NCBI GenBank assembly: GCA_965202585.1
Contig: OZ241829.1
Span: 29,884,001-29,948,000 of the forward strand
DNA from: Thalia democratica
Taxonomy: Eukaryota
Direction: 5' to 3'
DNA length: 64,000 nt
Shown one piece after another: positions 346-30,500 of this stretch (its first letter is position 1; each line of letters starts with the position of its first letter). The notes under the pieces are model-generated. The model saw nothing but the letters and a program-made list of their open reading frames with translations. It did no database searches and had not been told where the DNA came from. A program made the position numbers and the translations under genes.

Positions 346-534
346 TTTGTGAAAGTCTGCCGATTGTGAAAAACGCATACATGAGAGTTAATAACTTGCA
401 AGTAAGTTCACCTGGTGTTTACCTCAGTGGAACAGAAGTTATGTACATATGCGAAGATGGTTACGAAATCAAACAACCAAATATCACTTGTGGTTTGGAT
501 GGAAAATGGAGTGACGTTGTCTTCTGTTATCCTA
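346..534 (+). CDS. CCP exon 1 (type D)
   Basis: 189 nt, phase 1-1; CESLPIVKN..CGLDGKW..CYP. Confidence 0.9.
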
Positions 535-3500
535 GTTCGTACTTTAAAACTGTTGTTTATACATATATAATGGAACTTAAGAATTTTATACAACTTATTT
601 AATAATATATTCATTATGAATTTAGATAAATTTTATTTATATTTTTAAGACTAAGTAAGTGTGTCTTAAAAATTTGAACATTTTTATAACTAAAAATTTA
701 ATTTGTTTTCGTAAAAGGTTAGTATACTTTTTTTTAAATATTTTAACAAAACTAAAGAAATAAACAAGTAACACAAGTTTTTTCAATATTTAGTAAATAA
801 CCAAGTTAAAGCTCTACTTGAGTAAAAATTATAAACGTTTTGGCTTTCTCATTTCTAAATTAATTTTAAACTTTGCCTACGGGCTGAAAAATAAAAAAAA
901 TACTGCTTATTTTTTCCACAATTTCAAACAAAGTAGTCTTACAAGTTTGTTTTCTAGTTTGCGGACCACTGCCTGACATACCGAATTCCATCAGAAACAC
1001 AACTGAAGACGTGGAAATAAGTGAAGACGTTTCTCTTGACTTGGTGGTAGAGAATTTTTGTGACACAGGCTTTAACCTGGTACCTCCTGGCGTTGACACC
1101 TTTCTCAGATGCCTTACAAGCGGATCATGGCAGTATGACGATTTTCAATGCCTTAGAGGTGTTTTTGTTTAAACAATATATTTACTAAATGTTATTATGC
1201 AGTAGCTTTAATTATACGTTTCAAAGAAAAGACTTGAGAAAATAAATAGAGACCATTTCCTACAAAAATAAAATGTTGTGTGTAAGAAATAAAACACTTT
1301 ATTCTTATTATAATGCCAAAAACTATTTCAACTATCTAATAACAATAAAAAGTAATTAAATGTTAGGTCATTCTCTCTAAAATCATAAGCTGACTTGTTG
1401 TATAAAGTTTAATTTTGCTGTATAATTTCTACTTATAGTACATTTTATATCTACAAAAAACATCACGGTAAAAAATCCAAAAAACTCTATTGTAAATGAA
1501 GTTTAAATTTTAAAAAATATATATTACGAAAACTTAAAAATAACGACAAGTTGTTAACCTGAAGCAAACGTTTTTAGAATGTCCTCCTTTCAACCAAACG
1601 ACAAACGTGAAGATAACCAACCACACGATGCTCCATGATGAATTGTACGTGTCAGGATCTGTTGTGATCTTTTCCTGTGAAGGTCAAGAGATTTTGAGCG
1701 ATCCAGCAACAAGCATCGTAGGTTGTTCTCAGGACGGATACTGGAACTCATCTTTTCCCACCTGTGAACTAGGTTGGCTAAAGTTAATTATCGTGATATT
1801 TTTGTCTAATTTTTAATATGATTTGTTTTTATTTCAACCTAAAACTTTATTAACGTTTATTTTTGTACTAATCTGAGTTCTAATTTTCTAGAATGTCCAT
1901 CTCCAACATTAGACATTTTGAACGGTTCAGTTCACCTACTAACCCAATTACGCACTGATTACTTTCTCAACGGTGACGTAATAAAATACACGTGTGATGA
2001 GGATTACGAGCTTGTCAGCGGAAATGAAAACCATTACTTCTATGCATGCCAGAGCGGATCTTGGAACAATACAAGGATCCCGCTGTGTATTAAAGGTAAA
2101 AATATATGAAACCTTTAAACAACATTTTCGTAGCGTTTTAACTGCTTATATCGCAAAAGTTATTTAAAGAATTACTAATTTAAATTCTCATTAGCTTAAA
2201 ACTTAGTTATCCACTTGAAGTGATTTAAACCAACTAACAAAGCTATATTATAGTTTATGTTAATAAGATTGATAAGTACCTAAGTTGTTTTTCAAAACTA
2301 ATCGATACTTGCGTACACTCGTAATATCAAGCTCATCTTTAAAATAACTGTAACCTATTCAGAGTGTCCTGAACCACCTGAGAGTCCCCAATCCACGTGG
2401 CAAATCACGCAGTCTTACAGACAGGGAGAGTTTTACACCGGCACCACCGTCACCTACAAGTGTCAGCCTCTTCACGAGTTCGAATGGGACATGCCCGCAG
2501 AACGAACTTGCGACAGAAACGGAAATTGGAACATAGAAGACGCGCCAAAATGCCAACCATGTTAGTTTGTATTTATTTTTTTGTTAGTATGCTTTATATT
2601 TCATTCTTACTTAAGCTTTATTTTATGTTAAGCTGCTAGATTAGACTGTTCGTTAACACACAGCTATCCAAAGTAAAAAGCTAAAACAAAACAGATAATT
2701 TTTTAATTACAACAACAACTTTTCACAGTGTGCGAAGTGCCTCCGTTTGTCGACGATGCTTCCGTTCGAGTGCTGTACGAAACAAGAATTCAAAGCGGCG
2801 AAGTCGTACTGAGCAGGATCGAGTACGAATGTGATCAAGGGCACCTCATCAACGACGAGCTGCTGAGTCAGACTCGATGCTCGTACGGAGCCGTTTGGGA
2901 CTACCAAGAGTTGCCAGTGTGCTTCAAAAGTAAACAATCTAATTAATTTCGTAAAATCTTTAAACTTTTTATACATGATATCTTCACGAAATTATAAACA
3001 GTCTGTGAAGATAAGCCCATCGTGAACAACTCTATGAACAGCACGTATCTGTTCGTTGAAAAAAGAGAGGAAGAATATGTGAAGGGAACGACACTTGAAT
3101 ACAATTGCACTGATAATCACAAGCTCAGTCAACCGGAAACAGTTTGCGGCGTTGATGGAAAATGGACCCCTGAAGTCTACTGTCATCCAGGTAAAATTAT
3201 TTTGCATGTATCTAGTTTAGACTCAATTCTATTTTATAAATAATGAAGACATGATGTAAAAAAGAATGTAAGAGCAAGCTTATGCTTTTTGATTACAGCG
3301 TTCTATAGTATATTACAATGACTAGCTGTTTACGTTTAGACTGTGGAAAATCTGCTACAATACCGAACACGGAAAAGAAAATCATCAAGCAGTTTTCAAT
3401 CTCTAGCAGTTCTTTGTTCGGAAGCAGTAGTCTGGAGTCAGTAGTGGAGTACAGTTGCGTGGGAGACTACCATGTTGTACCCAGTACTGCTGACACCACT

Positions 3501-6500
3501 CACGCTTGTTTGACCGGCGGCTTCTGGAACTTTGACGACTTTGTATGTTTGAAAGGTGATACAAGCAATTTTTTTATGTACAGACTAGACATCTGTACAG
3601 AATACATGTATACACAATTAGTAAATATACTGTAATTTCTCATATTTTTTGTAATACTTCTGATTCCACAATTTTAAGTTTTTCAAATTACATTTTAGTT
3701 TCAATTTTTAGAGTGTCCTGCAATGTCAATAAGCGACCTGATAATCGTCAACGTAACGACGGAAAAAGAAAAGGATAGGCTTTTCAGCGGAACTGTGGTT
3801 GATTTCAAGTGTGTGAACGGGTATAGAATGAACAACTCGACTCTTAGTGAGAACATGTGCTTACCGAACGAAGAGTGGAAACTTGAATTTCCATCGTGTG
3901 TTCCAGGTTAGTTTAGTATTAGATATTTTTTTTAAGAAGTACGACAATTCAAGCTCACTTTAAGGTTTAAAAATCTTAAGAAGTAATGTTTGAAAAGTCG
4001 ACGGTACTAACACTTGTTGTTGTTCTACAGCATGTTCTAAACCTTAAACAAAACAAAGCTGATAAATTATAAAAATGTTTTAGATTGTGGTACTCCTAAA
4101 ACTTTTGACAATGCAACGCTAATTATACAATCAAGCAAAGAAGTTTATGATGAAGAAAGTGTTATAAGTTTGCCTCAGCAAGTAACTTACAACTGTAGCG
4201 CAGGATACGGTTTGGTTAAATTGTCGCATAAGGATGGAATCTGCGTTGGAGGAAAAAATAGTTCGCAGTTTTTATTCGGACCCGAAATGCTGGAGGATTA
4301 TCCGCAATGCGTTTTAGGTATTATAAAACGATAATATTAGTTAAAATGTTTATAACAATAAAAAGAATAATGGGATTAGTGTATTTGTAAGTCTATATAA
4401 TTTTCAAAGCAATAAATAAGCAAATAAAACAAATAAAGATATAGATACGTTCTTTATCAATCAGTAGGACTACTCCTTTATATAAAAATTTCAACAAATC
4501 TTTAAGTTTTCATTACAATAAAGAGGTTTTAATAAAAAACTACTTTTAAAGACTGTGGTGTCCCTAAAAGCTTCCCAAACACAACTGTCGAAGTCACTAT
4601 GAACGAGTCAGACGAAATTTATACGGTAAACACTCTTTTGACTTTTTCTTGCACAGCTGGCTATCAAATTTTACCTGCAGAAGATAATAAGGTTGTTTGT
4701 AATGAAGCAGGTTCATGGGAAGGCGAAGTAGGAGAATGTTACACAGGTGGGCTTTATATTCTAATAACAAAATGCATGTCTAATAAGCAAAAGTAAGGCT
4801 CGTTGGTAGTTTTTGTAAAGCACATAATACATTCTACTTACAACAAAATTTCAACTTGAACATTTTTCAGAAATCCAATGTCTGTCACCCGCGCCTGTGG
4901 TGGGCGCCACATACGAAGTAACAAAATGGGTCTACAACGGCATCTACTTGTCCGGCACTGAGATCAGCTTCACTTGTACTAAAGGTCTCACCATGACCCC
5001 TGATTCTTTCACCGGGAGAGTTTGCAAAAACAACGGGCTTTGGAGCTACCCCGCCAACGGAATCAGGCCAAAATGTGTAAAAGGTTTTTTTTTTTTGTAT
5101 AAAACCATACAATCATGAAGCTTGTATGATTTAGTTTGTTGCTAGCTTTTGATAAAACAAAAGTGTTTGATTTTAGACTGTGGAAAGTTTCCGTCAGTTG
5201 AAAATGGCAGAAAGGTTTTACTTGAATCAGTTATGAAGAACTCTACCTACGCAATAGAAGTCAGCGTTGAGTACATTTGCAATGAAGGTTTTATTTGGAG
5301 CTTGGACAGCCCGACGACTATAAACTGTGGGTTTGGTGTTGACGGTTTGGAATACGAAATAGGAAGATGCGTTGTTGGTAAGAGTAATTTAAATTGTGCT
5401 GATATATGAAAAGTTTATGTCGGTGTGGTAGGAATATTAATGTATTTAAAGATTAAGTTTAACAAATATATGAGTTTAGTCCTTCATATTGTAATTTATT
5501 TTAGTTAAGTTGCAAGTTTTATTAACAAGTTAATGTGACTAATCTAAACTTCGAGAAACACAACTACCTTTTAATACTTAATAGCAATAAAGTTCATAGT
5601 TTTCCAACTACTTTATAGTTATTAAGTTCTTTAACTTACTTTTGCAAATAAAAGCTAGTAGTACAAATGCCCTAGTAAAACTCGCAGTCTTACGTTTGTT
5701 TACACCATAACAAACCACTATGTTTATAACAGAGCTGCCGGAATTACCTGCAGAAATACAGAATGGAAGAGTGATTGTGAACAACAAACCGAGACAGAAC
5801 TCGAGCGTGGTCGGAACAGACATCACGTATGAGTGCGACGGAGACTTCGTTCTTTCAACTGGAACTTCCCAGTTTGTCGGAAACGCCGACGGCACTTGGA
5901 ACAGCGATGATCTCAACCCCATGTGCTTGAGAGGTAACAAAAAGCTAAAATTAGTATTGCAAATAGAGTGAGCGAAAGAACTATGGTTGAAAAAACGCTG
6001 TTTGATAGCTGTTTTACTAACTAATTTTAAGTTTTTGACTCTTTCTATCTTCAAATATAAGAGCAGTTTGTTTACTTCTATTTTTTTATGTTATTTATTT
6101 TTTCTTAGCAGTGCTTGACCTTTTCCTACACTAATACTTTCTGATGATGTTATAGTTAAATACTTTTTTGCAGAATGTCCGGATATACTAGACGTTTTGA
6201 ATGGCTCAATAGTGATAACAAATAAGATTTTGTCTGGACGCATGCTAGCTGGTGATGGGTTCAAGTACAAATGCGATGAAAACTACAAGTTTCACGAAGG
6301 TGCTGAAAGCGATTACAACTACGAATGCCAAGAAAACGGTTCTTGGGACAATGATAGAGCAGCACTTTGTATCACCAGTAAGTTACATTTGTTATATGTA
6401 TGATTTTTTCGATATGCTTCACTTTTAAATTTGAGGTTTTTAGTTTAAACCAACTTTTAGTTCTGACAAGTATTAAGATAATAAAAGCAGTCTCACAACT

Positions 6501-9500
6501 TTTCTGTATCGTTTTTAAGTTTGCTCGTTACAATTTAAAAGATATTATTTGCAGATATTATAAAACGGTTGCAATTCAAAATATGTTAATTTGAAAAAAC
6601 ACTTACAGTTTATTTAACACTCGATTGTTTTCAAGGGTGTCCAGACCCGCCCAAGCTCCCCGCTTTCGTGTCGAGGAAAATTTCCTTCACGCACATCACA
6701 GGTGAGTTTTGGACGGACACGGAGCTGACTTACGAGTGCGAGCCCATGCACAGCTTTCTGTTCGGTGCCAGTAACACTCGTGTCTGCGGCAGAGATGGAC
6801 AATGGGACGATAGCACTGTACCAAGATGTGTTCCAAGTTAGTTGAAAAGTTCGATTTCCGATATATAGTTCAATATGTGGTTTTGACACTCTGGTATTTT
6901 ACATAAGAATAATTCTAACATCAACAATGGCTTTACCTTTTTATCTATTTAAAATTTCACTTTTTAAAGCCACTGAAACTTTTTAAAGAACTACAACTCA
7001 GGGCCTCCTAAAAAGGCCGATTCAATTTAAACGCTTAATTGATTAAAATTTCACCAGTTTGCGAAGCCGCACCGACGGTAGAAAACAGCGGAATAACCAC
7101 CAGTGAACAGACGCTTTCCAACGGTGAAGTTGCCGAAAGCACTGTGACGTACACATGCAACGCGGGGTATTACATTGATGACGAAACGAACAGCGTGTTG
7201 ACATGTGAACTTGGTTCCGTGTGGAGGCCATCGAAGTTGCCTGTGTGTTTGAAAGGTTGCTGTAGTCATCCTTTGTCATAAAGTGTTTTAGCCGTGAAAA
7301 AGCAATAACAGTTTTATCGTTTCAGTTTGTGATCCGGTGCCGGACGTGGCGAACTCGAGAGCTACGTTGAAAACCGACGAATCAAGAGAGGGTGACTACG
7401 TGAGTGGTACAACTTATGAGTTTGAATGCAACCAACACTACGTTCAAAGCCACACCGAGTCAGCTTGTGGCGTCGATGGAAAATGGACTCCCGTGGTTGA
7501 ATGTGTGCCAAGTAAGCAGTTTATGGAGAATTTATTAAAACCAAAATAGGAAACTGATACATAATTGTTTAACGCACAGATTGTAAGTCACCAGCTACAA
7601 TTAAAAACGGTTTCTTCGATATTAATTTGGAGGTTGAAGTTTTGGTCGGTGGTGATGCTAAAACTTTCCAACAAGAGGTAGAATACAGTTGTAACGAAGG
7701 TTACGCGACGGTACCTTCGGCAGAAAATGTTTTGACTTGCAGTGGAAGCACAGGAGAATTTGAGCCATCTTTACCTGAATGCCTTCGTGGTAAAATACTA
7801 TGTATTATTGCAAATGCAAATTTTATAAAAACAATTTTGAAACAACTATGACTTAACTTTATAGATATAAATTATTTAAATATTGAGCTGTTACATTCCC
7901 TTTTAAAAACTAAATAATGGTAACAAAGTAATTTTTTTTTTACAAAACGGTAGCAATAACAAAAATATTAAGGTTAAGAAGTATTTCGTTGTAAATTGTT
8001 TGCAAATAGTGTGTCAATCTAAATAAATCTTTAAAATATCTGTACGATTTTAAACTAAACTTATCTGATGTACAATAGAAAAAGACTATAACATTTCTAC
8101 TCCTATTTTGAATTTTGATAGAGTGCCCCAAACCGCTGAAAGTTGAGAACGGAGAGCACACTGTTCACGAGAGGTACTTGTCCGGAATGTCGGTGAAGTA
8201 CACTTGCTCACCTGGGTACAGGCTCCTACCTGCAAACGAAGACACAATCACATGCACTGATGACGGGTCTTGGTCTGGAGACTTTGGCGGCTGCTATTCA
8301 GGTTAAAGTTGTTTGAAATCTTACTGAGTCGTGAGTTTGCAGCAAGTTTTAGTTACAAAAACAAAAAGCAGCTCTGTATTTCAAAGATTTTTTTTTGTGA
8401 ATTAACAACTTTTACTGCAGAAATCGAGTGTGAAAGCCCGCCTGGCATGGACAACGCCGTGTATGAAGTTCAAAAAGTTATTTATAAAGACGTTTTCCTG
8501 CCCGGCACTGAGCTGAAGTACACTTGCAACGGTGGGTACATCATGGCACCGGAATATTATGTCGGGCTGGTTTGTGGCGAAGATGGTAATTACGCCGCAC
8601 TGAGTACAGTCCCAGGCTTCGCAACCGGAGCTTGCTTGCCAGGTTTGGTTAATTTGTTGTAGTTTAGAAAAGTTAAAGCTTTAAATCACTCGAGTCTGCT
8701 TTCTTTAACTGTCATAACAAACATATTGTTTTTTGTGTTCAGCCTATTTAATTGTATGTAACGACGACTATGTAAGTTTTCTACGTGTAGCAACTTCATT
8801 GTAGCTATTATCTCATATTTTATATTTTGCTATGTTAAATTTAATTCTATTTTGTCAATGATTTAGAAAAAAAACTTTACTATCTTAATAAAAAACTTGC
8901 TCTCAATGAGTATTAACAGTCTAAATTAACATAACGGTTTTATCAACACTTCTGAATTAATTTCAGATTGTGGAGACTGGCCATCAGTAGAAAATGGAGC
9001 CAGAGTCAACCAAGATGTGAGAATGGTAACATTCGAAATTTTTTTAATTTTGTCTGCGAGGTTCTATTGTGACGAAGGGTACATTTATTCAAGAGAAAAC
9101 AGTTTGGTTACTTGCAGTGATCCCACCAGAAAATTGGAATTTGGAAACTGTGTTAAGGGTACATTTTTTTTGCACCTTATTTTAAGTTTTTATACTTAAG
9201 CAACTTTTTGTATAATGCTTGTAAACAAAAAATAACATCAACATTTTATAACTTATGGTTTCTATTACACAATCAAACATTTAGTTCATAAATAAACTAG
9301 TCCAAAAGTATACATAGCCGGAAAATTTTGACTTTTCTAAAATTTTAAATTAAATAAAAAACATTTCCAAGCCACTTATATATTCTTTTCATCAAACTCG
9401 TCCAAATTTTCAAAAACTTTTCAAACATCCATCAGCGTGCCCAGAGATACCAGAAAGCATAGAAAACGGAATAGCAACAGTAGAAGAGAGGCCAAGAGAA

Positions 9501-12500
9501 AACGTGAACGTGTTTGGCATGGTAGTTTCGTACAAATGCAATCAGGGCTACTTTCTTTCAACGCGAACCTCATTGTTTTTATGCGGGGAAAACGGCGAAT
9601 GGAACAGCAAAAACTTGAACCCCAAATGTTTCAAAAGTAAGTAAAGTCACAGTAAACTATAATGTAATTTTTGTTTACTAACGTTTATAACCTTGAATAC
9701 CTTTTCAAAACTTAAGTTCATGTTTTTTTTTACTTTTAAAGAGTGCCCGCCGTTTCCTGATATTACAAATGGCAAAAAAGAAGTGATAAGAAGCGAGAAA
9801 GTGAACGAAACTCATTCCGTGGAAGTCAGCGTGAGGTATGTCTGCACCAAGTGGCTTTTCTACACCCAACAAAGCCCCACTTTGTCTTGTGTTGAAGGTG
9901 GCTTTGACAACGAAGTTGGAAAATGTGTCGAGGGTGAGATTTCAATAAGTAACCTGGAAGAGTATTGATCAAACATTAAATTTATTCTTTAAAGTATACT
10001 TTTTTATGTAAAGTTTTTTTTTTCTTTTTCCAACGTTGTGTAGAAAATAGTAAAGAAAGTATCCAAAACGATTTTCGAACAATTAAATATTTCTTAAGCA
10101 AAAAAGTTTAATTTTAGTTTTTTTATTTTACATTTGTTTTAAAATGTTTACATCTTTTGCTGAAACTTGAACTAACAGTATAAAAAGGTTAATGGAAAGC
10201 TTCAAAGGTTTTATTTTTATTAAAAATACTATACGATGGTCTAAAAATTTCATGTTAATTAAAGCTCGAATTTATTTCACACAGAATGCCCGCCTCTCCC
10301 AGAGTTTCTGTACAGGGGTGAAATAACAGTAAACGCCAATCCGAGGTCGGACATTAAAGTTTTTGTGGCGGGCACAAGCATCACCTTTCAGTGCAACCCA
10401 GGTTATGCGCTGTCATCGCAAAACACCAACTACACTTGTCAAGATGACGGATCTTGGGATAATCAAGACCTTAAACCTGAGTGTTTGAGACGTGAGATAG
10501 CTTCTTTTACTTTAAGCATTTATATTATTTTGTAATATATACACACGTACTTTTTTGATTTTTTTTTTAATTTATTTTTACTTAATTAAGTAAACTCAAT
10601 ATACTATATAATACCAGTTGAACTTTTAACTAAAATTTATGAGAATTTATATTTGTAAGATATATTTTCTTACATTTCTTTGTATATCTTCTAACTGAAT
10701 ATAAGCTAAACAGCTGTATTTGTTACTGTAGCTCAACACACTTCTGAATAAGTTAAAGCTCAATTTTAACTCACAGAATGCCCTGCCCGAGACGGAAACA
10801 ACGTCCAGATCGAAATATCGAAGCAGTTTCGACCTGGTACTTTCGTAGGAGGCGACGTAGTAAAGTACACTTGCAAAGACGGCTACCGGTTTGCAACGGG
10901 GAGCGACAGCGACTACGTGTACTTGTGCGAGCAGAGCGGGTTTTGGAACAGCAGCGAAAATCCTTTGTGCATAACTGGTTTGTTTTTTCATGTTTAATGA
11001 ATTGAGCAACTTAGTATAAAATTTGTTGTTACAAAGTTGGCAGACTACTTTTATGATCGGCAGGCCTGATTTATCGGAAAAAATATTTTGCGGCCGCAAT
11101 TTAAAAAAGTGTTAGCAAGCTGCATATTTTTAAAAGTATACATTATAAACATTAAAAAGAATCTTACATAATAACATTACTACTGTTTATTGAAAACAAA
11201 TTAGAAGCTTATTAATAACAAATATTTCAAAACATGATCCTAATTTGTTTTCAGAACACACACATAAATTGTTTGTTAAACATGTGTACACAGTAGTGTT
11301 TATTAAACAGTATTGATTCAGTACACACTTTTTTTTTTCGATCTTTACAAGATGCTTTCAAACTAAAAAACTACGCCACAGGCCAAATATTTCTGCTGGC
11401 CAGTCAGAACCGGCCCGCAGGCCGTACGTTTCTCGCCCCTGTTACTTTTTGTACAGTTTGAAACATTAACACAGCCTTCGTTCATAGCTGACTGAAAAAC
11501 AGTGTAAATTTCAACACAGAATGTCCTCCGCCACCCAGCAGCAACTTCAGCAGCTCGACAATAGAATTCACCTACTTTGTTAACGAGTACTGGACGTTCA
11601 CGCAAGTTTCCTACACCTGCAACCCCGGCTACACGTTCCTGCCCGGAGAAACAGACAGGCGAGTTTGCGGAGTTGAAAACGAAGACGGCGTGTGGGACAA
11701 TTACAAGGCTCCTGAGTGCGCTCCCGGTCAGTAGTGAACTGTTTTTTTTTAATTATTAAAGAAAAACATTTTTTTTACTAAATAAAGACTTGTAGCTATA
11801 AATTACATGAATCAAATGTAGACATGGTTTATATCAGTTAACCCTTTCAAATACTGTGCTCATTAAATTACTAGAAAACAAAATATGTGCACACTAGACT
11901 GTAAAAATATTAATAAATATTCAATAACAATATTCTTATTTTTTTAGTGTCTTAGTATACAGATAATGAGTTATAAACTATTAATTTAAGTTATAATTAG
12001 CTTTTTTCAATTTTGAAAATATTTTCTCAATTTACTAAATTTATGTGGACAGTGAAATAAAGTTTGTAAACACCGTGAAGACCACTGCTTTGTACACTTT
12101 ATAAAGATTCACTCGTTTTCGTTTTAAAACTTTAGATATGAAACTAAACATCGGTCGTTAAAACAGATTGCAGCGCACCTCCAGCCATACCGTACGCCAG
12201 ATACGAAGCTCCTCTTGTTGACAGGTACTTGTACGGTACTGTTCTCAACTACCAATGTTTAAACGGCTATGCAAACAAAACGACCATCGCTGGCACTATT
12301 GAGTGCAAAGGGGGATCGTGGAGCGAAGCGATAAGGTGTCCGCCCGAAACATTGAAAGGTTTGATTTGCAGTTGATATCATAACTACTTTATATTGCATT
12401 TAAATAAAAAAACTAGTTTTTTTTCTAGTTGAAAGAATTTTTTCAAACTTTCTAGTGTTTTTATATGTACTCTATGTTAACTGTTATTTCGTTTGAGTTG

Positions 12501-15500: not shown

Positions 15501-18500
15501 TAATACACGCATGTTTTTTGTAATTTACATTCTGCTTTATTACATTTCTAATTTGTTTTTAGCGTGCCCGACACCCGGGATCACCGAACTTAAAAACGGC
15601 CGGTTCCGCATCAACAGGTACGTGAGAGCAGGCTACTTTCTCGTTACTGACATTGTAGAGTACACTTGCGACCAAAACTACATGTTTCACATCGGAAACC
15701 AGAGCGACTACTTGTTCGAATGCTCTCAAGACGGAAACTGGCACAACTCCGAATCGGGAAACAACTTGCAAACAGTGACACCGCTCTGCATTACTCGTTA
15801 GAAATTTTTATTCAGAAGAGCAATATGTTTAATAATACTTTAGTCCCACCTGTCTTATTTGTTCAAAAGTATCGAATCTAGTTATAGTATGTTTAATTTC
15901 TAGAGTGTTCTGACCCGCCCGCAGGAGCAAATGTGTTTAGTAATATTTCGTTTACTCATATTAAACGTGAATTTTGGTCGCATACGGAATTGACTTATCA
16001 GTGCGAACCTAGACACAGCTTTAAATGGGGTGAAAAAAGCACTCGTGTTTGTGGGGGCGATGGAAATTGGGACAACAATAATGCACCAATATGTGTCCCA
16101 GGTAAGCTAACTTTTTATCTCAGGTATAACTAAATATCAAACACATAAAAATAAAACATTAATTCAAGTGTGTGAAGACCCTCCAACTGTTGATAATTCA
16201 GTACTAAATGAAGTAAACAGCGTATTACTTCAATCTGGTGATTATTTTACAAATATTTATGAGTATGCTTGCAAAAACAACTACCACATTGATGACATAT
16301 CAAAAATGGTCATTAGCTGCCAATCGGGTTCAGCAACTTGGAATTACACATCCTTACCTGTTTGCTTGAAAGGTTTGTTTTACATTAATCATGTAAAATA
16401 TTTGAATTGTAACTATTGTTTTTACAGTTTGCGACTCATTACCAACTGTTGAGAACTCCGAAAACAGTTACACAACTCCAATTATTAAAGAGGGAAATTA
16501 TGTAAACGGAACAACAGTTACATACACCTGCAGTAATAATTACGTACAAAATGGAAAATATATTGTCTGTGGTGTTGATGGTACTTGGTCTGGAAAAGTA
16601 GAATGTTATCCAGGTAACCAACTTCTCATACTTTTTTTTTCCAAAGGTACTAAAACAAATACTTTAATTTCTGCTGTATAAATATTTGTACCTTTATCAT
16701 AAATGAATATTAAAAATACAGTCTCTTGTAAAAGTATATAAAGTTCTAGTTTTTAGTACCTTATTAACCTTTGCACACATTTTTGGGAGAATTTTTGTTA
16801 GAATGTTATAATGGTCTATTCATTGTATCGTATGCAGTATCTCACTGTAAGCAAAAAAAAAACGTTTGTAAATTTCATCCAAAAGTATCTATTTACAGAT
16901 TGTGGAACGTCACCAACTATACTAAATTCGCGGAAAAACGTTAAAAAAACAATAGTTGTAAGCGACACTGTAACGTTAGAGTCTGAAGTTCAGTATACTT
17001 GTGATATAAACTACAGAAGTAACCCATCAACTGCTACTAGAACATACACTTGTGAAAACGGTGGCAACTTTACACACACACAATTTGAATGTCTAAGAGG
17101 TAAAGTTTTAAAAAGTAAACTGAAGCTTTATGCATATTTAATTTTAAAATCACTATACTCTAAGTTTATTTCTCAACCTGAACACTTAAGTAAAGTAGAA
17201 CAAGAACTGTTTAAATTGATAGTGTGAGCAAAACTTTTTTTAAATTTGAAATTGTAACTGAGACAATGATTTTGTTTGAAGTTTTAAAATTATATAATTA
17301 TTAGTTACTAGTAGAGTCTTTTTTTTCGTTTTTTTTTTTTTGCATTTATAAAGGTTAAAAAAAAAAGAAACTGTCTGATAGCTAGACGTATATTTGAGTG
17401 CTTTAAAACTAACGAGCAATAATAGTAAAAATGTTCAGCGAATATTTATTATTCAACAGATGTTTCGTTATAACTATTAGTTTTTCAACTACAATAAAAT
17501 GATAAGATCAAAATCATTTTTTAAGGGCATAGGGGAGTTCACCTTGATTTTTACAAGTTAATCTTATTTTATAGAGTTTTATCTGAGCTATCAGACACTT
17601 TCAAGTGCCTAAAAAACACAAATTAACTTTTGAGATATAATCGATCAGAGTCGGTGTGCTCAATAGGTTCCATATGGAAGGAGCAAACCAAAAACGAGGA
17701 AAAAACTATTTCATTTAAAATCTGCCTTCTACTTAATTTTTAACTAATCTTCTTTAAACTTTTACAGTATGTCCATTACAAAATTGTAATTAAGTTTAAT
17801 GAAGATTTTTTTTTACTTTTGAAAAATAAAGTTATTATCAAAATTAAAACGACTTATTTTTTTTTTTATTAGTTTTTGTTTTCATATATTTTTGAAACTG
17901 CAACATTTAAAATTCTTTTAAACATTAAAAAAAGTTTTAAGGTCTCTAGCTCAAAAGTTGGAGAATAAGATAGACTTTTAACGATTTTTAAAGTTTCCCA
18001 GAAAATTGACCCTGAAAAAATTGCGGTCCATATGTTTGTATCGGAAACTTTTTTACAAAAAATACAGTATCTCAAAATTTGTATAAGATTTTCAAATTCT
18101 ATAAAAACTGGCTCGTAGTTTGTATTTAAAGCTTTGTTTTTATTTGTAAAAAAATATGTTTAAACCCTATATGCCCTTAATCCAAATAAAAACTATGAGT
18201 AATTAGTGTTTTTACAACTAATTAGTTTTTGATAAATAAAGCTTTAAAATAGTTAATCAAAAAAGTAATTAAGTATTATTAAGTTGTTATTAAAAATTCA
18301 TAGCAACCAAAATTTTAGGTCTTTAACCTTTAAAACTATTTATGAGTGACTATTAATTGTTATACAAAAACAAGACTATTAAGATGTATAACAAAAATAT
18401 ACACAAAAAGTTATTCGAAAATTAAATTAAAATGAAATAAATTTTAAGTAAGACAACTTGAAATGCGGACATAAAGTAGAAAGTTTAGTTCTTAAGTTCA

Positions 18501-21500
18501 AAGATTTTCCTCTTCATAAACTAGAGTAACATGCTACTAAACAAAATATAGAATGCCCATCTGTCCCCACAAGTGATGATGCATTATCATATGTTGTATC
18601 AAATGTGATAGAAGAAGGAACACTTTTTAGTGGAACTGTAATTAAATTTTCTTGTATCACTGGTCGTCCGATTAACAATGACGGATTAACAATCAATGAA
18701 TGTCTTGATAATGGAGAATGGGAGTCACCATTTCCATATTGCTTAAAAAGTTTGTCATTTCTTTTAGTTCTTTCATGATCAGTGATATCAAATAAAACTT
18801 CTAATTGAAACAAATTTCTAATTATCGCATATATATAGTGTCTTGAATAAACGCTAATAATTCTTTCCTTTTTTTCATCAAAATACCTGTTGAATCAGTT
18901 TTTAAATAAAAACTTTAGAATGTCCCGATCCCCCTGAAGGTTCTTCAGTGTCCTGGAGTATCACTTCAAGTCTGGTAGCTGATGAGTTTTGGAGCGAAAC
19001 TGTAATTACTTACGAATGTAACCCAATGCATGGTTTTGCGTGGCTTGAAAACAGTGTCCGCGTCTGTGGAAAAGATGGTAATTGGGACGACAATACCGCA
19101 CCAAAGTGTACTCCGTGTAAGTAGAAACTTAAAAAAGTATAGTTTGTTCAAGGTTTTGTTTTTTTTTCTTAGACTTATAATTAAAAGTAATTTAAAGTTT
19201 ACGTGAATGTATTTCGAACTGTCTTTACTTACGATTATCAAAAACCATGCCTAGTGTTATTTTTTAGAAAATATTTTGCTTCTTTTTTATCCAGTAGAAT
19301 TCAAATAAGTCAAGTCTAAATAGTGTATGTTTTTAATTATTTTAGTATGTGAAACCCCACCGACCGTGCCGAACTCAAATGTGAGTGAGTCTTATAACAA
19401 GTTGTCCGATGGTAGTGTCACTTCTAGTTCTGCTCAGTATCTCTGCCACCCAGGGTATTACATCGATGACGAATCAAACAGCGATTTTCAGTGCACTTCT
19501 GACGGTATTTGGTCGCCGGAAGAGTTACCCGTCTGTTTAAAAGGTTACACAACTTATTAATTGTTTTATTGTTTGTGTGCAACAATATTAGCACCTGCAA
19601 GGTGTTTTGTAGCAAAATAAGCTTAGCAGATTCCATTAAAGTAATTTTCTGTAGTGTGCGACAATTTACCAACTGTGAGCAATTCAAATGGCCCTATTAA
19701 ATCAAATGAGAACGTAAGAGATGGCAATTATCTAAACGGAACGACATTTGAATTTGAATGTCATGAACATTACGTTCAAAGTTATAAAGAAGTTACTTGT
19801 GGCGTCGATGGAAAATGGACACCTCTAATCGAATGTGTACCAAGTAAATAATAACATTAAAACATTAATTAATAATATTTGGTATAAAAGATTTAAATCA
19901 TACTTTACAGACTGTGGAGACTTTACAGAAATCGTAAACGGGCACTTGGCAAATTATTCAGAAACTTTGCTTTCAATTGACGGTTCATTGGTAGGCTATC
20001 CACAAACGCTAAGATATGCGTGTAACGAAGGTTACGCAACGAACCCGGGTACAGAAACAGTACTGAATTGCAATGGACTAACAGGAGCTTTTGAACCTGC
20101 ACTACCCGAGTGCTTCAGAAGTTAGCAAACCCCTATAAAAAGTTGTGTTCAGCTGGTATCAGTATTTAGTGTAGTTATTTTTTTGTATACTTATTTCACT
20201 ATAGTTTGTTTGAAACCTTAATTTGATGTTCAGTTTTTAGCCATTGCATGCTTAAGTACTTAAAGGTTTAGTAAAGCAGTTTACTTTGTAAGGCTCCCAA
20301 TGTTTCACCATATTAAATTATGATTTTTTTTTGAAGCTGATGATTGTACACCGATTAAGGTTGTTCTCATTTTAAAACTTATAAATGAGCTTTGATTTAT
20401 TTTGCTCCTTCAAAATATTCTTAAAAGTTTTAAAGTTTCTAAGTAGCAAATTAACTTAGTTTTAAACTCATAAACTTGCAGAATGTGAAGACCCACCGTT
20501 AGTTGACAAGGCAAATCATTCAACTCACGATATTTATCTGTCGCCCGTTTCTATTGTGTACACTTGCATCACAGGATTAACTCTTTTACCTAGGACTGAT
20601 ACTACAGTTACTTGCACTGACCATGGATCTTGGTCTGGAGTCCTTGGAAAATGCTACTATGGTTCGTTGCTATTTTGAATAACTTCAAAGATTTTAAACT
20701 CTTAAGAATTTTATACTAAAGCATTCAAAACCAGTGAATGGTAATTTACAAGATTTAATAATTTTAAACCAGATAACTTTTTTCGGCATGAACTTTAACA
20801 TCACTACATAAATAATAATTTTGGATTTAATATACAGGAAAGTAGAACTTTCTGTAAGCAAATATCGTGATCATTTCTTGTAGCACATATTTAAACAAAC
20901 TAAAATTTATAAATATTTTTATATTTAATTAAAATAAAAGTACTTTACTGAAAAATTTGAATATTTAATATTGTAGGTTTGATTAAACCATATAAATCTA
21001 AATACTTTTGTAGTATATTAGCAAAAAAAAGTTTTACTATTTTTCATAAATTATAAATCACATAATAAACTATTGCTTAATCTTTCTAGAAGATACATTG
21101 TAAAAAAAGTTCAAATAGACATTAGCGCAAGAAATTAAACTTAAACAAGTTTAAACTGTTCAAAAAATTATTAATTTATTTATATTTATTAGTTAAGTAT
21201 TGACAAGTACTTCATTTTTAAATAAAAAAGAACAATCTTTTATTTAAGAGTAAAATTTAACTTTTTGTAATTATGACTTTTTTAGAAATTTCCGTTGCGT
21301 AGATTTTAGAAAGTTTCGATTATATAACTCTTTAGCTTATATCAAATAACTTTTTGACTTTCTTTTCAAACAGTTAAAAATCAAATTAAATCTGAAATTT
21401 TATTATGTCTTATTTATTTAAAAAATCTATTTATTTTGTTACACATATGCCTAAAAATACTACCGTGAGTTTATACTTTTATAGACTTTTTTCTGTTTAA

Positions 21501-24500
21501 AAAAAGCAGCTGTAGTAAACTATGTAGCTTTAAAGTTTATTATTTAGGTTTTTTACATAGTTTTTCAACATTAAAACGTTTATAAGCATTAGTTTTTACA
21601 GTTATTTAAATAAAGATATTTTTAGAATGTCCTAACCCGCCTAACAGCGATCTTTTAAAATGGACTATTTTACATTCGGAAATACCAGATGAAATTTGGT
21701 CGGGTTCAGAAATAACGTACACGTGCATACTTTCTCATAGCTTCAAATCAGGTGAGAGCATAACTCGCGCTTGTGACAGCGAAGGAAATTGGAATGACAG
21801 TAATCCACCAAAATGTGTCCCAGGTAAGCTGACATTTTATTTAAGATGTAACTAAATGTCCAAAAAAATAATAAAACATCAATTCAAGTGTGTGAAGACC
21901 CTCCAACTGTTGATAATTCAGTGCTAATTGAAGTAAACAGCGTATTACTTCAATCTGGTGATTATTTTACAAATATTTATGAGTATGCTTGCAAAAACAA
22001 CTACCACATTGATGACATATCAAAAATGGTCATTAGCTGCCAATCGGGTTCAGCAACTTGGAATTACACATCCTTACCTGTTTGCTTGAAAGGTTTGTTT
22101 TACATTAATCATGTAAAATGTTTGAATTGTAACTATTGTTTTTACAGTTTGCGATTCTTTACCAACGGTTAATAACTCTGAATTCATATATTCAACTCCA
22201 ATTATTAAAGAAGGAAATTATGTAAACGGAACCATAGTTACATACACCTGTAATGATGATAACAAACAAAATGGAAAAGATATTATCTGTGGTGTTGATG
22301 GTACTTGGTCTGGAAAAGTAGAATGTATTCCTGGTAAAAAAACGCTGTCTTTCATTTTTCGACGCACATTGTAATCTGTGTCGTACTTTGATTTTTGTAA
22401 AAACACATAAAGTATTTTTGTTCTTTTGAATGATACTAACAAATTGTGTTAAGTGTATTAATATTACAGACTGTGGAAAGTCGCAAAGCATTCCAAACTC
22501 AAAAAAGAAAGTCGTCAGCACAATCACTTTAGAAGATGGTTCAGTACTAGAGTCCGTTATACAGTATACTTGCGTTAAAGATTACATAACTACCCCACAG
22601 AATGCTGATAGAACTTACACTTGTGTGAATGGTGGCAACTTTACTTACACAAAGTTTCAATGTCTAAAAGGTTTTTTCTTTTAATTAGTACTTTGTAAAA
22701 ATGCTCAGTTTCAAGTTTACTTATAAAGTTTTAGAGAAACTGGTTCTTTTAAAACTGTTTTGCAATAGGTTCACTTTAAATTAGTTATCTATAAGAAACA
22801 AATTTACAAAATTCGTATTTCAAATATATCACTTTCGGACCAAAAGTTTTTAACTTTCGGACCAAAAAAAGTAAATGATAATCTTTCAAACGGGTTTTAC
22901 TTGTCTCAATCAATTTTCAACGTTGTTTTTTACAAGTCGGTGTAATTACTAAAAATTTTCTTGCAGAGTGTTTGAGTGATGAAATAAGTTTGCCTTTAAC
23001 TTTCAATGTTGATACTGCAATAGAAGAAGGATTACTTCTTAGTGGGACTGTAATAAGACTATCCTGTGAAGGTGGCTATTCACTTAGCAATTCAGCATTA
23101 GAGCTAAACAAGTGTCTTCCCAATGGAAAATGGGAACTTGTTTTCCCAACTTGCGTACCAGGTATGTTAGTTATTTAATTAGATGATAGATAAGATTACA
23201 TTAAATAGAACAAAATATTTAGTTTTGTTTGACAAACAATTCTTTAAAACTCTCAAAACTTTAGACTGTGGAAGCCCAGCTATTAAGAATGGAAATTACA
23301 TCACGTTGTCGAGCAAAGAAATTTTAGTTAACGGAGTGACAACGCTTCTGCCTCATTTCGTTAAATACTCTTGCAACAAAGGTTACGCCTTAAGGTCACC
23401 TGACTTTGCAAATTCGACCTGCAACGGAGAAAGTGGAAATTTTGAACCGGAGATAAAGTGTTTAACATGTAAGAAAAGCCACTTTGAAATGCAATAAAAT
23501 GTAGTTCAAACAAAATATTCAAGTTTGCTGTTAAGATAATGCATAACCATTAACTTAATTTAAATTTATCAAAAGTGCATTCAGAAAAACCAACTTTTTT
23601 CTTTCAGATTGCGGTGACCCTCCAAACATACCAAACACGTGGTTAATTGTATCTCCAATTAGAAGTATAGTAGGTGAGCGAGTTATTTATGTTTGCAAAA
23701 TTCAAATATTCTTGCCGCAGAAATTAGAAACAAAATTCTGTATGGAAAATGGAAAATGGGAGCCGGAGGGAGGAAAATGTTACACAAGTATGTATTCAAT
23801 TTAATCGACATATCTCAAAGTTTTAGCAAAAGCGTTACTTTATTCCAGTAGATTAATATAGCCATGCATGTCCATAACTACTCGTTTCATACTTTTTATT
23901 TTTTTCTAAATTAAAAACCCTTACTTGTGTAGTGATGTCATCAATGTTACTCCAGGCCAAAGGTGTGTTACAAATCCTGGTCCAATTTCGAACGCAGCTT
24001 ACACTGTAACCAAATGGATTTACGATGATAACCGAGAGGGTATATGGTTTGGTGGCACGGAAATTGAATGGAAATGTGACCCCGGCTGGACCATGACCCC
24101 GGACAGCTTTTATGGCCAGTTGTGTGGAGTCGGCTGGAGATCTTTGTACAGGGATGGGCGGAGTGATATAGATGAAGTAAAAAAAGGAAAATGTGTTAGA
24201 GGTAAAAATTTACAAGCCGTTTTGTGTTTTAATATCAGTACGTTCGATCTTTAAAAATAAGTATTTATTTAAAAATAATACAATTATTATAGTATAAGCA
24301 TTTAATCTATTTAGCTTTTTAATTTTTGTGTTCTTTTCAAACTAATTTAGATTGTGGAGCCTTTCCTACAATCGAAAATGGCATAAAGCGGGTTATTAAT
24401 AGCACAATAGTTAATTCTACTTACTCGATTGAGTTGGTAGTTTCGTACAAATGTAAAGAATTGTACTTCTGGACTGGCGGTCAGACGACCACCATAAACT

Positions 24501-27500
24501 GTCAACAAACCTCCGACGGCACTTACGACAGCGACATCGGAAGATGCGTGCCGTGTAAGTTGCTTATCACATCAGTTTTACTTGCACTTCAGCATATCTC
24601 AAGTTAAGCCTTTCAAAACTAGCAGCGGGTAATTAAAAAATGCCTGTTCAATTCATTTTATTAAAGATAATTAGTGCAAATCAAACAAATTACTAGTTTT
24701 TTTAACCAAAAGTATTTTGAATGTGCCATAAAATTTATTTTTATGTTACGATGATTCTTGTTAAAGGACTTTTCATTTAAAGTTTAACTTTGAGGGGGAT
24801 TTTGTATTTTTTTTTTAAACACGTTCGATTATAGTAAGTACGTTTTGTATTAAAAGACTGTTAACGCTTCTCTACTTCTGTAGCATGTGCACCAGAGTTG
24901 CCTATGTCCATAGAAAATGGAAATGTTGAAGTATTCCAATCTTACCCGCCGAGCTACACGGCTTATAGAACGAGTTTCAAGTATGTTTGCTACGAAAACT
25001 ACAAGCTTTCTACTTCGTTCAACGAAATTACTTGTGGTGCTGACGGATGGAACAATCAGGTGACTCAGCCCAGATGTCTAAAAGGTGAGGCTTTCGCTCG
25101 AAAATTAGCAGCTATAAAGATAAATAAAACTTAAAATACTAAACTGAAACAAAACAGAATGCCAGCCTCCAGGCGTACTTTCAAACGGCAAAATTACCAT
25201 CGACCGAGTTCGAGAAGGTTACATCCTGAGCGGTGACGTCATAAAATACAGTTGCGATGTGGGTTTCCAGTTTCACGAGGGAGATGAAACAGACTACGTC
25301 AACGAATGTCAAGGAGACGGCAGCTGGAGCAACACAAGAGTTCCATTCTGCGTCAAAAGTATTTTGTCAGATCCAAACGTTATTTAAGTCGATATTTTCT
25401 TCAAATTTTTAATTTTCAATGTGTTTTTAGAATGCCCCAATCCACCCGAAGGCCAAAGATCATCGTATGAAATTTCATTCACGCATATTAAAGATGAATA
25501 TTGGACTGACACAAAAGTGACATATGCGTGCAATGCTGGCTACACTTTGTTTTGGGAACATTACGTTTATCAGACATTGGAACGTGTTTGCACCAGTGAT
25601 GGGGTTTGGGATGACAACACAGCTCCAAAATGCGTTCCAAGTTTGTAGTTTTATAACACGAAAGTTTATTCATCACATTTGAACTTTGAAGCATAAAAAC
25701 AAAATAAAGTTGGCTGGTATATTTTCTAACTAAATAAATATAAAATGAAGCTCTAATGTAACAAAAGAAAAAAAATGTTAATATTCAAATAGCGTGTGAA
25801 GTTCCACCATTCTTGGACAATTCGTATATTAAAGAAATAAACGCAACTCACGTGGAATACTGGTGCATTAGAGGTTATTACATCAGAGGCGCGGACAACA
25901 GGCTCTTTGGATGTCAGAAGGCTGAGTCTGGAGATTTTTGGTATCCTTCAAAATTACCTACATGCCTCCCAGGTATTTTCAAACTAGTTAACATTTGCTC
26001 ACGTTTAAAATTTTTGATTAAAACGACCTGATATTTTCAGGCTGTGGTGTAAACCCCGTGGTTCCAAATTCGAGTGGGAGTAAAGCCGTAGTGAATAATT
26101 CTGTGGTCATTGATAATGAAGTCTTTTTCACACACGGCGCCAAGATTGAATACACGTGCAACAACAACTATGGCTCTCGGTATTCACAGACAACTTGCAA
26201 CAGAAACGGAGAATGGTCACATGAAGTCATATGCGTTCCAGGTTAAAACAAATTCATAATAAGAAAAAAAATTCTACAGTTTTGTTGAAACACACTTTTT
26301 AACAGACTGCGGTCAGCCTACTCAAATACAAAATGGGGTCGTAGAGAAGTCGATTGACGGAAATAGCTTTAGTATCAATTCAGAAGACTTACCTTATTAC
26401 CAAAATAACTTTCCTCAAACGGCACTGTACACTTGCCACCAGTTCCATTCAATGCGACCAGGAACAGATAATCAAGTTGAATGTAGCACAACAACTTTTA
26501 TGTTCGAGCCGTCTGCCCCTGATTGCTTACCTGGTAGTTTATCGACATGTTTTAACAATCGTTATAATTGACCTTCGGGTTTTCAGTTTTTACTGTATAA
26601 GTTTATATGTTTTTTTCACAGAATGCCCAGACCCACCAACGTTTAAAAAAGCAAGTTTCACAAAAGAAGATAAATACTTACCTGGTTCAACCGTAGAGTA
26701 CACTTGCGAAAAAGATTACTCGTTCTTACCCGAGGGAAAAAACACAATTTCTTGCGCTGAAAACGGAACTTGGACCTTGAATCTCGGCATATGTTACTCT
26801 AGTTTGTTTCCGGTTTTTTTTTAATAACCCGCTTCTACATCTGAATATTTTTTGTAATGCGCTTGCTTACTTATTAAAAGTTTAAACGCTCGATATCTAA
26901 TTGATAGTTTTTTTACACAATTATAGACAAATTATTGTGCAATTAAAGCTATGCTCATAAGACTATAAATTAACTTAAGGTTTTAGTATAACAAAGCTAA
27001 ACATACTTTAGACGTACGGTGCAAAGAATACACGTTTGAAAATCTTGAAAACTCGGATCCGAAATTTATTTGGATACACTCCCCCTACTACCTGCCTGGC
27101 ACTGAAGTGAGGTATGAGTGCCTTCCTGATTACGTGAAAGCGCCATCGTATTACAAAGGAGTTGTTTGCGGCGAGGACGGTCAGTGGCAACCAGTGACTA
27201 CGAACAGTTTGCACACATCGGCTTCTTGTATAGCAGGTTTAATGTTTAACTTTGTTTTTTAAGTTTCAAACTTACAAGTGCTAAAAAAACTTTTAAGACT
27301 TAGCGTTTAAAATATGGTTAGACTATTATATAAAAAAACAAATGTAAGCTAAATTAATTTTTGATTCTTGCTGCTTTACTTTAAATCAAGCAGTTATTTT
27401 TTTACAAGTTTTTTGTTTAAAATGTTTTAAGAACTGTTCATATTCAAAACATTCATGGTGTTTGAACCACTAAAAACCGTATTTGTGCATTAACTTTTTA

Positions 27501-30500
27501 TCACCTAAAAGCAACATGTTTGATAATTTGAAACTTGAAAACAGTCTAGGAATAAAATGTCACCTCTTCTATACTGATAAACAGACTGCGGTGAGTTTCC
27601 ACCAGTAGACAATGGTTACTTGACGCGTTTAGTGGGGCCATTTGAAATAGACGAAAACCGATTTGTAACAACCGAAGTGAAGTACAATTGCCACCGGGGC
27701 TACGTTTACTCGAAAGAAATCAGCAAATTTACTTGCAATCACCCCTCGGACACGTTTAATTTTGGAACCTGCGTCACAAGTATTACTTAGTATAGATATT
27801 ACAAGTTTAGTTTATTTTTAAGCCACGAGTGTAAAATATAACAGCAAGTTGTCTTTTACCGTAACAAAAATAACACTATTTAAAAACGCGTTCACTCTGC
27901 CTTTTGTGTTCAACTAATCTTTCAATGTACAGCTTGCAATAGTGACCTAAAAGGCTCAAGTCCAAGTATGAATGTGATATTATCCGCAGCACGCTCGATT
28001 TACATTACACCAGGAACAACAGCAGAGTACACTTGCAGGTATAAAGGCAAGTATCTTACGCCGGGCATCGCATCGTCTTGCGTCTCAGTTTCCGATTGGA
28101 GATATCCCGACGAACTTTTGTGCCCGAGAGCAAAATACCTTTGCTTGTCGGACGGAAGTTGGGAAAGAATCGGGCAGTTTTCTTGCCGCACAGGTTTGTG
28201 AAGAAGTAACTGTGCAAAAAACAAACGGTACAAAACAAAATTTAAACTGTAGTTTTTAGCTTCGCAACGTTTTGTTTTTACTTAAATAGACTTAGGATCA
28301 ACCAAGTTACGCTTTTTTCCAACAATTTTTTTATTGCTTACGGATGTCTAAACTTTATTACACTTTTATAAAACCACAGTACCTCTACGAGATAAAAATT
28401 AAATTTAGTGTGTTTTAGTATTTTAATTCCTTTGATAACTTAAATTTCAACTTCACACCAACAACATGTACAAAACTTAAGTGTTACAAAGCTTATACAT
28501 TGAAACAATTTAGAATGCGGGAGTCCTCCCGAGAGTAGTACTACAGAATGGACTTTAATTAGTTTTGATAGAGTCGACGGCAAATTTTTTACTGGCAGTT
28601 TAGTCTTTTACTCCTGTGTTGATACCACTTTTGTGGCAAAAGAGTCCAAAGCGCAACGTACTTCATATTGTACAGACAAAGGAGATTGGGACAGGAGCGA
28701 AGCGCCTATTTGCGTTCCTGGTAAGACTATAAGTATACTTTTCTGTCTTAACTTTTACAGCGCTATTTATGATAGCTTTTTTGTGTGCAACTTACTTGCT
28801 AGAAAATTTTTTCATGTCGTAACTATTAGACTAGCAATCTTTTTACTCTTATTTGCATCTGAAACCATAAAAAAACTCAGCTTGCACTCGACTACCAAAG
28901 ATTACTTTCGGAACATCTGAGGTTGTCAGAAACGGTCACCCTGACGGTCATAGCGTGCAGGGAACCGCAGTGAAAGTCACTTGCGACGACAATTACTACC
29001 TGTCAGATCCTGTACACTCACCGGCTTCTGTAACTTACGAGTGCGTAGAAGACGCCGCAAGCAGCCACGTTAAATGGAACAACCCAGACGTGCACCCTAT
29101 ATGCTTGAAGAGTTTGTGATCTTTTATATATTTCAATTGACTTTTTTCTGGTTTTGTGTAACTTTACCTGTATCTAATTTGCTTAAAACAATACTTACAA
29201 AAGACTTGAATTGAGCACTTTTCATTTAAATATTTTCAATATTGAATACTTGAATTTTTGTATGATACAAGTACAGTAACCTCTCGCTTATTCACGCACA
29301 TTGTGTCCACAGAAAAAGTACGTAAAGATACGAGAGATCGTAATGATACGAGAGGTACCAAATATACTTACTTTAATGGCTGTTTTTTGATATTGCTTCT
29401 ACTTAAAAGCAGACTGGGGACTTTCCCACTTTTAACAATTTTTTACTTTATTTATAAATATGAAGAGAAAAGATAAAACCATACATATGTTAAAAAAAAG
29501 GATTTAAATTTATATAGAATAATAATAGTTGTAGAAAAATTTACTAATTTTAATAATAAGTAGATTTTATCTTTATGTGACTTATTTGATACTTAACATT
29601 TATACTCTATTCTACTTAGAAAATTCAATTTATAATTAAGCATTTGTTTACAATAAAGAACTTAGACTAAAAAAAGTCAAAAGAAAATTAGTAATATAAG
29701 TACTACAAAAAAACAGTTGAGATTTGTGTTAAGTGTAAGTTCTATATTTATTAAGCATCACTTTTTGTTAGGAAGTTTAATTAGATTTCTTTTTTAAATG
29801 CTTATACATCTATAGGGCAAGAGAGCTGTATAGTTTATTTGTGTTTTAAAATATTTATTATACTTACTCACAATTTCATTATACTTCCATTATTTAACAC
29901 AGTCATATTTCTTTCAGAATTTTAATTTAATCTCTTATTGTTAACAAAATTTCTGATATACCAAAGTATAAGTAAATATTTATCAATTAGTCAAGGAACA
30001 TAAGTTTACAAAGTCTAAAGATATATAGAGAGGTGAGTTAGCATTAAAAAACATGTTTAAAAGTATACAATAAACCTAATTTGTGCAATATTAAAAAAAA
30101 ATTTAAAATATTTATTTTTTGAATTTTTTTGAATTCTATAATAAACGAGAGTGCGTAACGTCACGAGTGCGTAAAGATGCGAGAGGTTACTGTATTTAAG
30201 CTTTCATGCTGTAAGAAAATTTTGTTAAGAAAATTTTATAAATTCTACAATTTTGTTCATTATTATGACGTAATTATACTACTAAAGATTACATTCTATT
30301 TATGTTCAAAACTAGTTTAGTTATCAAAAAACGTTTGCATGTAAAGTAAGTTAGTTTTAAAAAAATTTAAACAATTTTTTTTTAAACATAGCTTATAGTT
30401 TTTTATTTAAACTTTCTAAGTTTTTATTTAGGTAATTAAATTCTGAGTTTTTTATAAAATAAGTGTATAACAGTTAATTTATGTTTGATTTTAAATTCAA

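Follow-up and report, generated by a model that had tools for sequence, protein, structure and literature searches.

The CCP array and its gene

The stretch of DNA analysed here, called the window throughout, comprises 64,000 nucleotides of AT-rich animal DNA from Thalia democratica (C5:29884001-29948000). It carries a long array of CCP/sushi domains on its forward strand, and the main analysis concerns window positions 346-29111 (+). A search with a CCP profile built from the window itself finds exactly 65 CCP domains in this region. An earlier note on this DNA had claimed 65 CCP exons between the same two positions, and the profile and the splice borders reproduce both the count and the coordinates exactly. 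Each exon holds one CCP, with an AG acceptor one codon before the first cysteine and a GT donor two codons after the fourth. All 65 exons are of phase 1-1 with lengths divisible by 3; joined, they form 13158 nt of stop-free sequence encoding 4385 aa, and the introns of this 65-exon model measure 55-1452 nt (median 167). At 58 of the 64 junctions, a linker of three residues separates the fourth cysteine of one domain from the first cysteine of the next.

The Pfam Sushi profile (PF00084, E<=0.01) matches 59 of the 65 exons, the best at 2.6e-12, and the remaining six, exons 13 and 63 among them, are matched by the gene's own CCP profile only. The alignment of the domains gives the consensus C..PP..N....G....Y.C..GY....C...G.W....P.C, in which the second cysteine is invariant, the other three CCP cysteines are each present in at least 90% of domains, and a tryptophan precedes the fourth cysteine. 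In a CCP, a module of about 60 residues, the first cysteine pairs with the third and the second with the fourth.

The gene exceeds this region at both ends. Upstream of the window lie four further CCP exons, u1-u4, 204-2259 bp before the window start (C5:29881741-29883796); no CCP exon was found in the 77 kb preceding them. No phase-1 donor was found after the last cysteine of u1 and u2, whose 3' borders are uncertain. In the nomenclature of domain types introduced below, u1-u4 are unclassified, M, B and C, so the "DEF" with which the window begins is the tail of a block "M-BCDEF". Spliced contigs from a marine metatranscriptome run contain the joints 25972 to 26041, 27236 to 27585 and 27779 to 27933, which are the predicted introns 57/58, 61/62 and 62/63. 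One RNA contig runs from the end of exon 65 (29111) into letters that are unique in the window, at 31302, where they are preceded by AG; the gene therefore continues past exon 65 into the following feature.

31302..34062 (+): 3' part of the gene; exon at 31302 spliced to exon 65, about three Cys-rich modules, frame ending near 34062

Pfam and PDB sequence searches of these 3' modules returned nothing above threshold and C-type-lectin hints only: Lectin_C (PF00059) at E=0.041 and 15.1 bits against a cut-off of 22.6, Chordopox_A33R at E=0.043, and mannose-binding protein A at E=0.25-1 among PDB sequences, the exon-split domains having been compared with Pfam piecewise. The locus is probably a single expressed animal gene whose product is a giant, rod-like and probably extracellular protein of about 69 CCP domains followed by a short Cys-rich tail. 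Secretion is suggested by the domain content. A CCP domain is about 3.5 nm long, and a protein of this composition would form an extracellular rod roughly 250 nm long, one end of which may be lectin-like.

The 65 exons in the window fall into the following blocks, in which letters denote domain types and the evidence for each assignment is given last.

346..1772 (+): exons 1-3, types D, E and F, end of the first M-BCDEF block; block tree (u3-01,29-31), support 100/98
1892..5933 (+): exons 4-14, 11-domain unit ABCDEGHIJKL, first copy; best hits and block trees
6174..9636 (+): exons 15-23, 9-domain unit ABCDHIJKL, first copy; best hits and block trees
9742..10491 (+): exons 24-25, extra KL pair of the 13-14/53-54 lineage; KL block tree, 96/96
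10777..11726 (+): exons 26-27, AB pair, B27 being sister to B56; type-B tree (27,56), 91/86
12167..15396 (+): exons 28-33, second M-BCDEF; (u3,29) 97/93, (u4,30) 84/95, exons 3 and 33 mutual best hits
15563..18749 (+): exons 34-39, ABCDEG; BCDEG tree (05-09,(35-39,45-49)), 100/100
18919..20661 (+): exons 40-44, BCDHI, a second-half insertion copied from the 16-20 lineage; BCDHI tree, 100/100, and DNA-level matches 18/42, 19/43 and 17/41
21626..25084 (+): exons 45-54, BCDEG and HIJKL, 45-49 copying 35-39 and 50-54 partnering 10-14; best hits and block trees
25158..28193 (+): exons 55-63, ABCDHIJKL, second copy and partner of 15-23; block trees, with introns 57/58, 61/62 and 62/63 confirmed by RNA
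28514..29111 (+): exons 64-65, divergent terminal CCPs with weak B and L labels; similarity and ML (maximum-likelihood) tree

Domain types and collinear similarity

Domain similarities were averaged over three paralogs of the gene, described below, for 69 positions (u1-u4 and the 65 exons). The earlier note had sorted the exons into a string of 13 types, and most of that string stands. An all-against-all alignment of the domains already backs these letters, and the averaged similarities do so more strongly. The nearest position is of the same type in 60 of 69 cases, compared with 5.2 on average and at most 17 in 20000 label shuffles, and unsupervised clustering agrees with the assigned types at an adjusted Rand index of 0.77-0.79. 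What does not hold firmly are the labels of 63 (L), 65 (L), 10 (H), 31 (D) and 64 (B). Exon 63 (27933-28193) is atypical altogether, with 86 aa, six cysteines, an insert and no Pfam Sushi match. Mean identity is 0.37 within types and 0.26 between them. In an ML tree of 200 domains, types A, E, F, G, I, J and K each occupy one side of a branch, while two changes are required for B, C, H and M, three for D and four for L; position 30 (C) joins the upstream C exon u4 in the type-specific tree only (84/95). We read these trees as unrooted splits only; rooting single-type trees by another type as outgroup proved unreliable.

The similarity is not merely typewise but runs along the array. Adjacent best hits are collinear 25 times, whereas shuffles of position within type give 8.4 +/- 2.9 and none of 5000 reaches 25. 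Best hits at an offset of 40 positions join 51-54, 56-59 and 61-62 to 11-14, 16-19 and 21-22; those at offset 24 join 16-20 to 40-44, those at offset 10 join 35-39 to 45-49, those at offset 30 join u3, 2, 3 and 9 to 29, 32, 33 and 39, and those at offset 11 join 13 to 24 and 6-7 to 17-18. The all-against-all comparison and phylogeny that had been proposed as a check on the string thus bear it out, with most types grouped in the ML tree and the off-diagonals contiguous. The subtype motifs quoted in the earlier note are all present in the domains, and of the pairs it had listed, 12/52, 13/53, 22/62, 9/49, 3/33, 17/41, 18/42 and 19/43 rank as best or near-best hits; for the pair 21/61 identity gives only a tie, and the support comes from the trees.

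Block trees and the probable order of growth

Trees were then built from concatenated blocks, each block being represented by the three paralogs.

HIJKL blocks: ((10-14,50-54),(19-23,59-63)), support 100/99
BCD blocks: (u3-01,29-31), support 100/98
BCD blocks: (35-37,45-47), support 100/100
BCD blocks: (16-18,40-42), with 56-58 next, support 88/85
BCDEG blocks: (05-09,(35-39,45-49)), support 100/100
BCDHI blocks: ((16-20,40-44),56-60), support 100/100
KL blocks: {13-14,53-54,24-25} against 22-23 and 62-63, support 96/96

The HIJKL tree has a nested pattern, which means that the two HIJKL subtypes predate a large duplication that copied both. Successive block duplications, as the earlier note had supposed, are therefore well supported, and so is its view of 24-25 as a further duplicate of 13-14. 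Its mirror of exons 5-23 in 45-63 needs amending: 50-54 and 55-63 do partner 10-14 and 15-23, but 45-49 are a direct copy of 35-39 and mirror 5-9 only indirectly. Its mirror of 1-9 in 31-39 holds and reaches further than claimed, extending upstream of the window to u2-u4, which correspond to 28-30. The BCDHI tree also places 40-44 in the lineage of 16-20 and not in that of 56-60.

These relations suggest a stepwise history, whose order we infer from the trees. Because the exons are symmetric (phase 1-1), any block of them could be duplicated by unequal recombination with the reading frame intact. A unit ABCD(EG)HIJKL would first have been duplicated to give the 11- and 9-domain units. About 26 domains (M-BCDEF and the 11- and 9-domain units) would then have been duplicated as a whole, producing the diagonals at offsets 30 and 40. 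The second half would next have gained ten domains, with the 16-20 lineage supplying BCDHI and 35-39 supplying BCDEG, and the small KL and AB additions would have come last.

Three collinear paralogs

Two collinear paralogs lie on other chromosomes, at C1:35133652-35163716 and C9:25777183-25808863, both on the minus strand. The same domain order is kept over 65 positions in all three genes (C5, C1 and C9): between paralogs, 60-64 of 65-66 positions are each other's positional best hits, the paralog sets are monophyletic at 61 of 66 positions, and 50 of 65 exons have identical length in all three. Mean positional identity between paralogs is 69-76%, compared with 37% among positions of the same type. 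With dS of 0.56-1.0 and dN/dS of 0.20-0.31 (synonymous divergence and the nonsynonymous to synonymous ratio) between paralogs, the three genes, as judged from these ratios, keep the 65-position order under purifying selection.

At the DNA level, the blocks within the window share six short exon matches, and similarity between introns is confined to one tract. Collinear paralogs together with the lack of intron similarity outside that tract indicate that the type order predates the triplication of the gene and has not changed since. Block growth would accordingly have been completed before the C5, C1 and C9 paralogs split, and the array would have been frozen from then on, recurrent gene conversion aside.

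Conservation between paralogs is uneven along the gene. The first half, to exon 27, is better conserved than the second (mean identity 0.78 against 0.68, p=4e-7), and the fastest-evolving exons are 43, 50-52, 58 and 60. Exon 14 (5733-5933), an L-type CCP, is without the first and third cysteines in all three paralogs and is conserved otherwise; both partners of one disulfide are missing in three of three genes, which points to an old, tolerated loss of one CCP disulfide. The 3' tail is kept behind the last CCP of the C9 paralog and was not found in the C1 stretch examined.

The C1 paralog has a different tail after position 62, consisting of five CCP exons of two alternating kinds (C1:35130735-35133452, minus strand). 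These replace exons 63-65 and the lectin-like modules, and the second halves of its exons 66 and 68 are nearly identical.

A tract of gene conversion

The one tract with intron similarity has two copies in the window.

16150..16606 (+): copy a, intron 35, exon 36, intron 36 and exon 37; 93.9% identity over 457 bp
21870..22326 (+): copy b, intron 45, exon 46, intron 46 and exon 47; 93.9% identity over 457 bp

The similar region extends over 15968-16617 and 21690-22337, with a core that is 97-100% identical and includes both introns, and exons 36 and 46 share 99% protein identity. In all three paralogs, copies a and b are more alike within a gene (0.8-1.0) than either is to its positional ortholog (0.6-0.9), while the flanks show the reverse. 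Exons C36 and C46 cluster by gene, with support of 100/99 in C5 and 99/95 in C9. Since both copies are present in all paralogs and cluster within genes, they predate the triplication, and homogenisation has acted on them gene by gene. As read from these alignments, this is concerted evolution, in which about 450-570 bp (exons 35-37 against 45-47) are homogenised by gene conversion in all three paralogs.

One might instead take the near-identity of 36-37 and 46-47 for a recent duplication or an assembly artefact. The 99% protein identity would fit such a reading, and long repeats can be mis-assembled. Both copies nevertheless occupy the same positions in three paralogs, and the high-identity tract is sharply bordered in each gene. 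In its flanks, exons 48-49 and the 5' part of exon 45 match their orthologs in the other paralogs and are just 50-60% like copy a. We regard this reading as very improbable beside gene conversion.

Interpretation and alternatives

Taken as a whole, the account of one expressed gene of about 69 CCP domains that grew stepwise by nested block duplication before its paralogs split, and was then frozen except for conversion, appears highly probable to us. A number of observations weigh against it. Each single-domain tree is built on about 65 columns, and many forks in these trees are unresolved. The ABCD four-block tree pairs 04-07 with 55-58 (79/79), in disagreement with the BCD tree; B16 is nearest to B35, and 05-07 are not sister to 35-37. 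As these trees read, the history is partly mosaic and not strictly hierarchical, and the conflicting placements require that block exchange or differing duplication borders be allowed. The comparison of block order covers one species, through its three paralogs. RNA evidence covers exons 57-65, the last tenth of the array, and no convincing candidate for a signal-peptide exon was found within 5.7 kb upstream of the first CCP exon. In C9, exon 45 (C9:25782989-25783191, minus strand) carries an expansion of a 5-bp tandem repeat, GGCGA, that shifts the frame; all other C9 exons are open, and the C9 copy may be decaying or mis-assembled.

The low level of similarity itself suggests another explanation, that the types reflect convergence or chance resemblance within a generic CCP fold and not duplication: mean identity within a type is just 0.37, against 0.26 between types, and the labels of 63, 65, 10 and 31 were not recovered. 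Chance groupings of this kind would give about 5 nearest-neighbour agreements in place of the 60 of 69 obtained, and 8.4 collinear best hits in place of 25. Several types are, moreover, strongly monophyletic, and the same block pairs are recovered from independent domain types, so that convergence is scarcely credible as the source of the types. The earlier note had suggested a titin-like role for the 9- and 11-domain units, in which they may fix a periodic spacing for binding or assembly; the conserved order and position-specific identity of three paralogs under purifying selection, together with the uniform linkers (three residues in 58 of 64), speak for it. The suggestion does not survive closer comparison. 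The 11- and 9-domain units occur twice each, both through a single large duplication; the blocks vary irregularly in size (11, 9, 2, 2, 6, 6, 5, 10, 9); identity between equivalent positions in the two copies is only about 35-50%; and no conservation is linked to the units, since conservation between paralogs is uncorrelated between offset-40 partners (Spearman -0.28, p=0.26) and falls along the protein from the first half to the second. No periodic partner is known. We consider it distinctly unlikely that the units are functional super-repeats.

Constraint, measured as identity between paralogs, tracks position along the protein and not domain type. A position-coded scaffold, in which each of the 65 positions would have its own role, partner or self-assembly register, is a speculative reading of this pattern that we hold to be quite unlikely. 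If it were true, it would explain why three paralogs keep every position over a dS of about 0.6-1.0, and the converted exons 36-37 and 46-47 would mark two sites kept equal, for example binding or dimerisation sites ten domains apart. Only if position-specific conservation reflects such a defined binding register would the array raise a new biological question.

Comparison with known repeat proteins

A precedent among CCP proteins is CR1/CD35, in which long homologous repeats (LHRs) of seven SCRs (short consensus repeats) occur in 3-6 copies in human alleles; these repeats are thought to come from unequal crossing-over, and the gene cluster that contains CR1 undergoes frequent gene conversion (PMC10086816). 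The present gene resembles CR1 in having a long tandem CCP/SCR array with a repeated multi-domain unit and in its block duplication. It differs in scale and layering, with about 69 domains of about 13 types and nested block sizes of 2, 5, 9-11 and about 26. The LHR copies of CR1 are of very high identity, whereas the copies here are far older (35-60% identity), and the units occur twice, separated or interrupted by other blocks. The CR1 architecture of a head-to-tail unit in several high-identity copies is accordingly not that of this gene, whose tail is possibly lectin-like where CR1 has a membrane anchor. A profile search of representative proteins found no orthology to CR1 or to the proteins of the RCA (regulators of complement activation) group.

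That single search covered 1.84 billion representative proteins and returned 1363 at E<=1e-30, including proteins from amphioxus, Styela, Lingula, Mercenaria and Elysia that string together 50-80 CCP domains. None of the matched giant CCP proteins is an ortholog or has this order of types, and the best per-domain identity, with a median of 36%, is scattered over many proteins. Giant invertebrate CCP proteins with SVEP1-like or CSMD-like annotations (amphioxus XP_078687161.1, Styela clava XP_077970683.1, Lingula XP_023933392.1 and Mercenaria XP_053403087.1) offer a close parallel, as multi-domain periods are present in some such proteins too, of 10 CCPs in P0002 and of 2 and 6 CCPs in the Mercenaria protein. 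Most of their repeats are young and regular, whereas the present gene has old, multi-level repeats that are fixed in its paralogs.

Titin A-band super-repeats follow 7- and 11-domain patterns of Ig and FN3 domains, and the likeness lies in ordered domain types arranged in multi-domain units by block duplication of symmetric exons. In titin the units recur 6 and 11 times, forming a regular lattice that fits the thick filament, whereas each unit here occurs twice, irregularly and with no sign of periodic constraint.

Higher-order CCP repeats are thus already known, and this array is unusually multi-layered and old among them; the pattern is real, and it is an ordinary mode of growth for such genes. 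Its value lies in being a clean and well-dated case in which symmetric phase 1-1 exons would have allowed an array to expand through nested block duplication before it froze. Three paralogs within one genome serve as a built-in outgroup that separates old duplication from ongoing conversion. For annotation, similarity between exons within this gene should not be taken as recent duplication, the conversion tract excepted.

Other observations

Window positions 24300-29200 are present at 90-99% identity in several marine or seawater metagenome runs, from which it follows that the animal or close relatives of it are common in marine samples. The same positions are also present in a second labelled organism (share 0.71). 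Elsewhere in the window, on the minus strand, one open frame at 60769-62202 encodes 478 aa with BACK and Kelch repeats; it represents a BTB/Kelch-like gene that is apparently intronless there.

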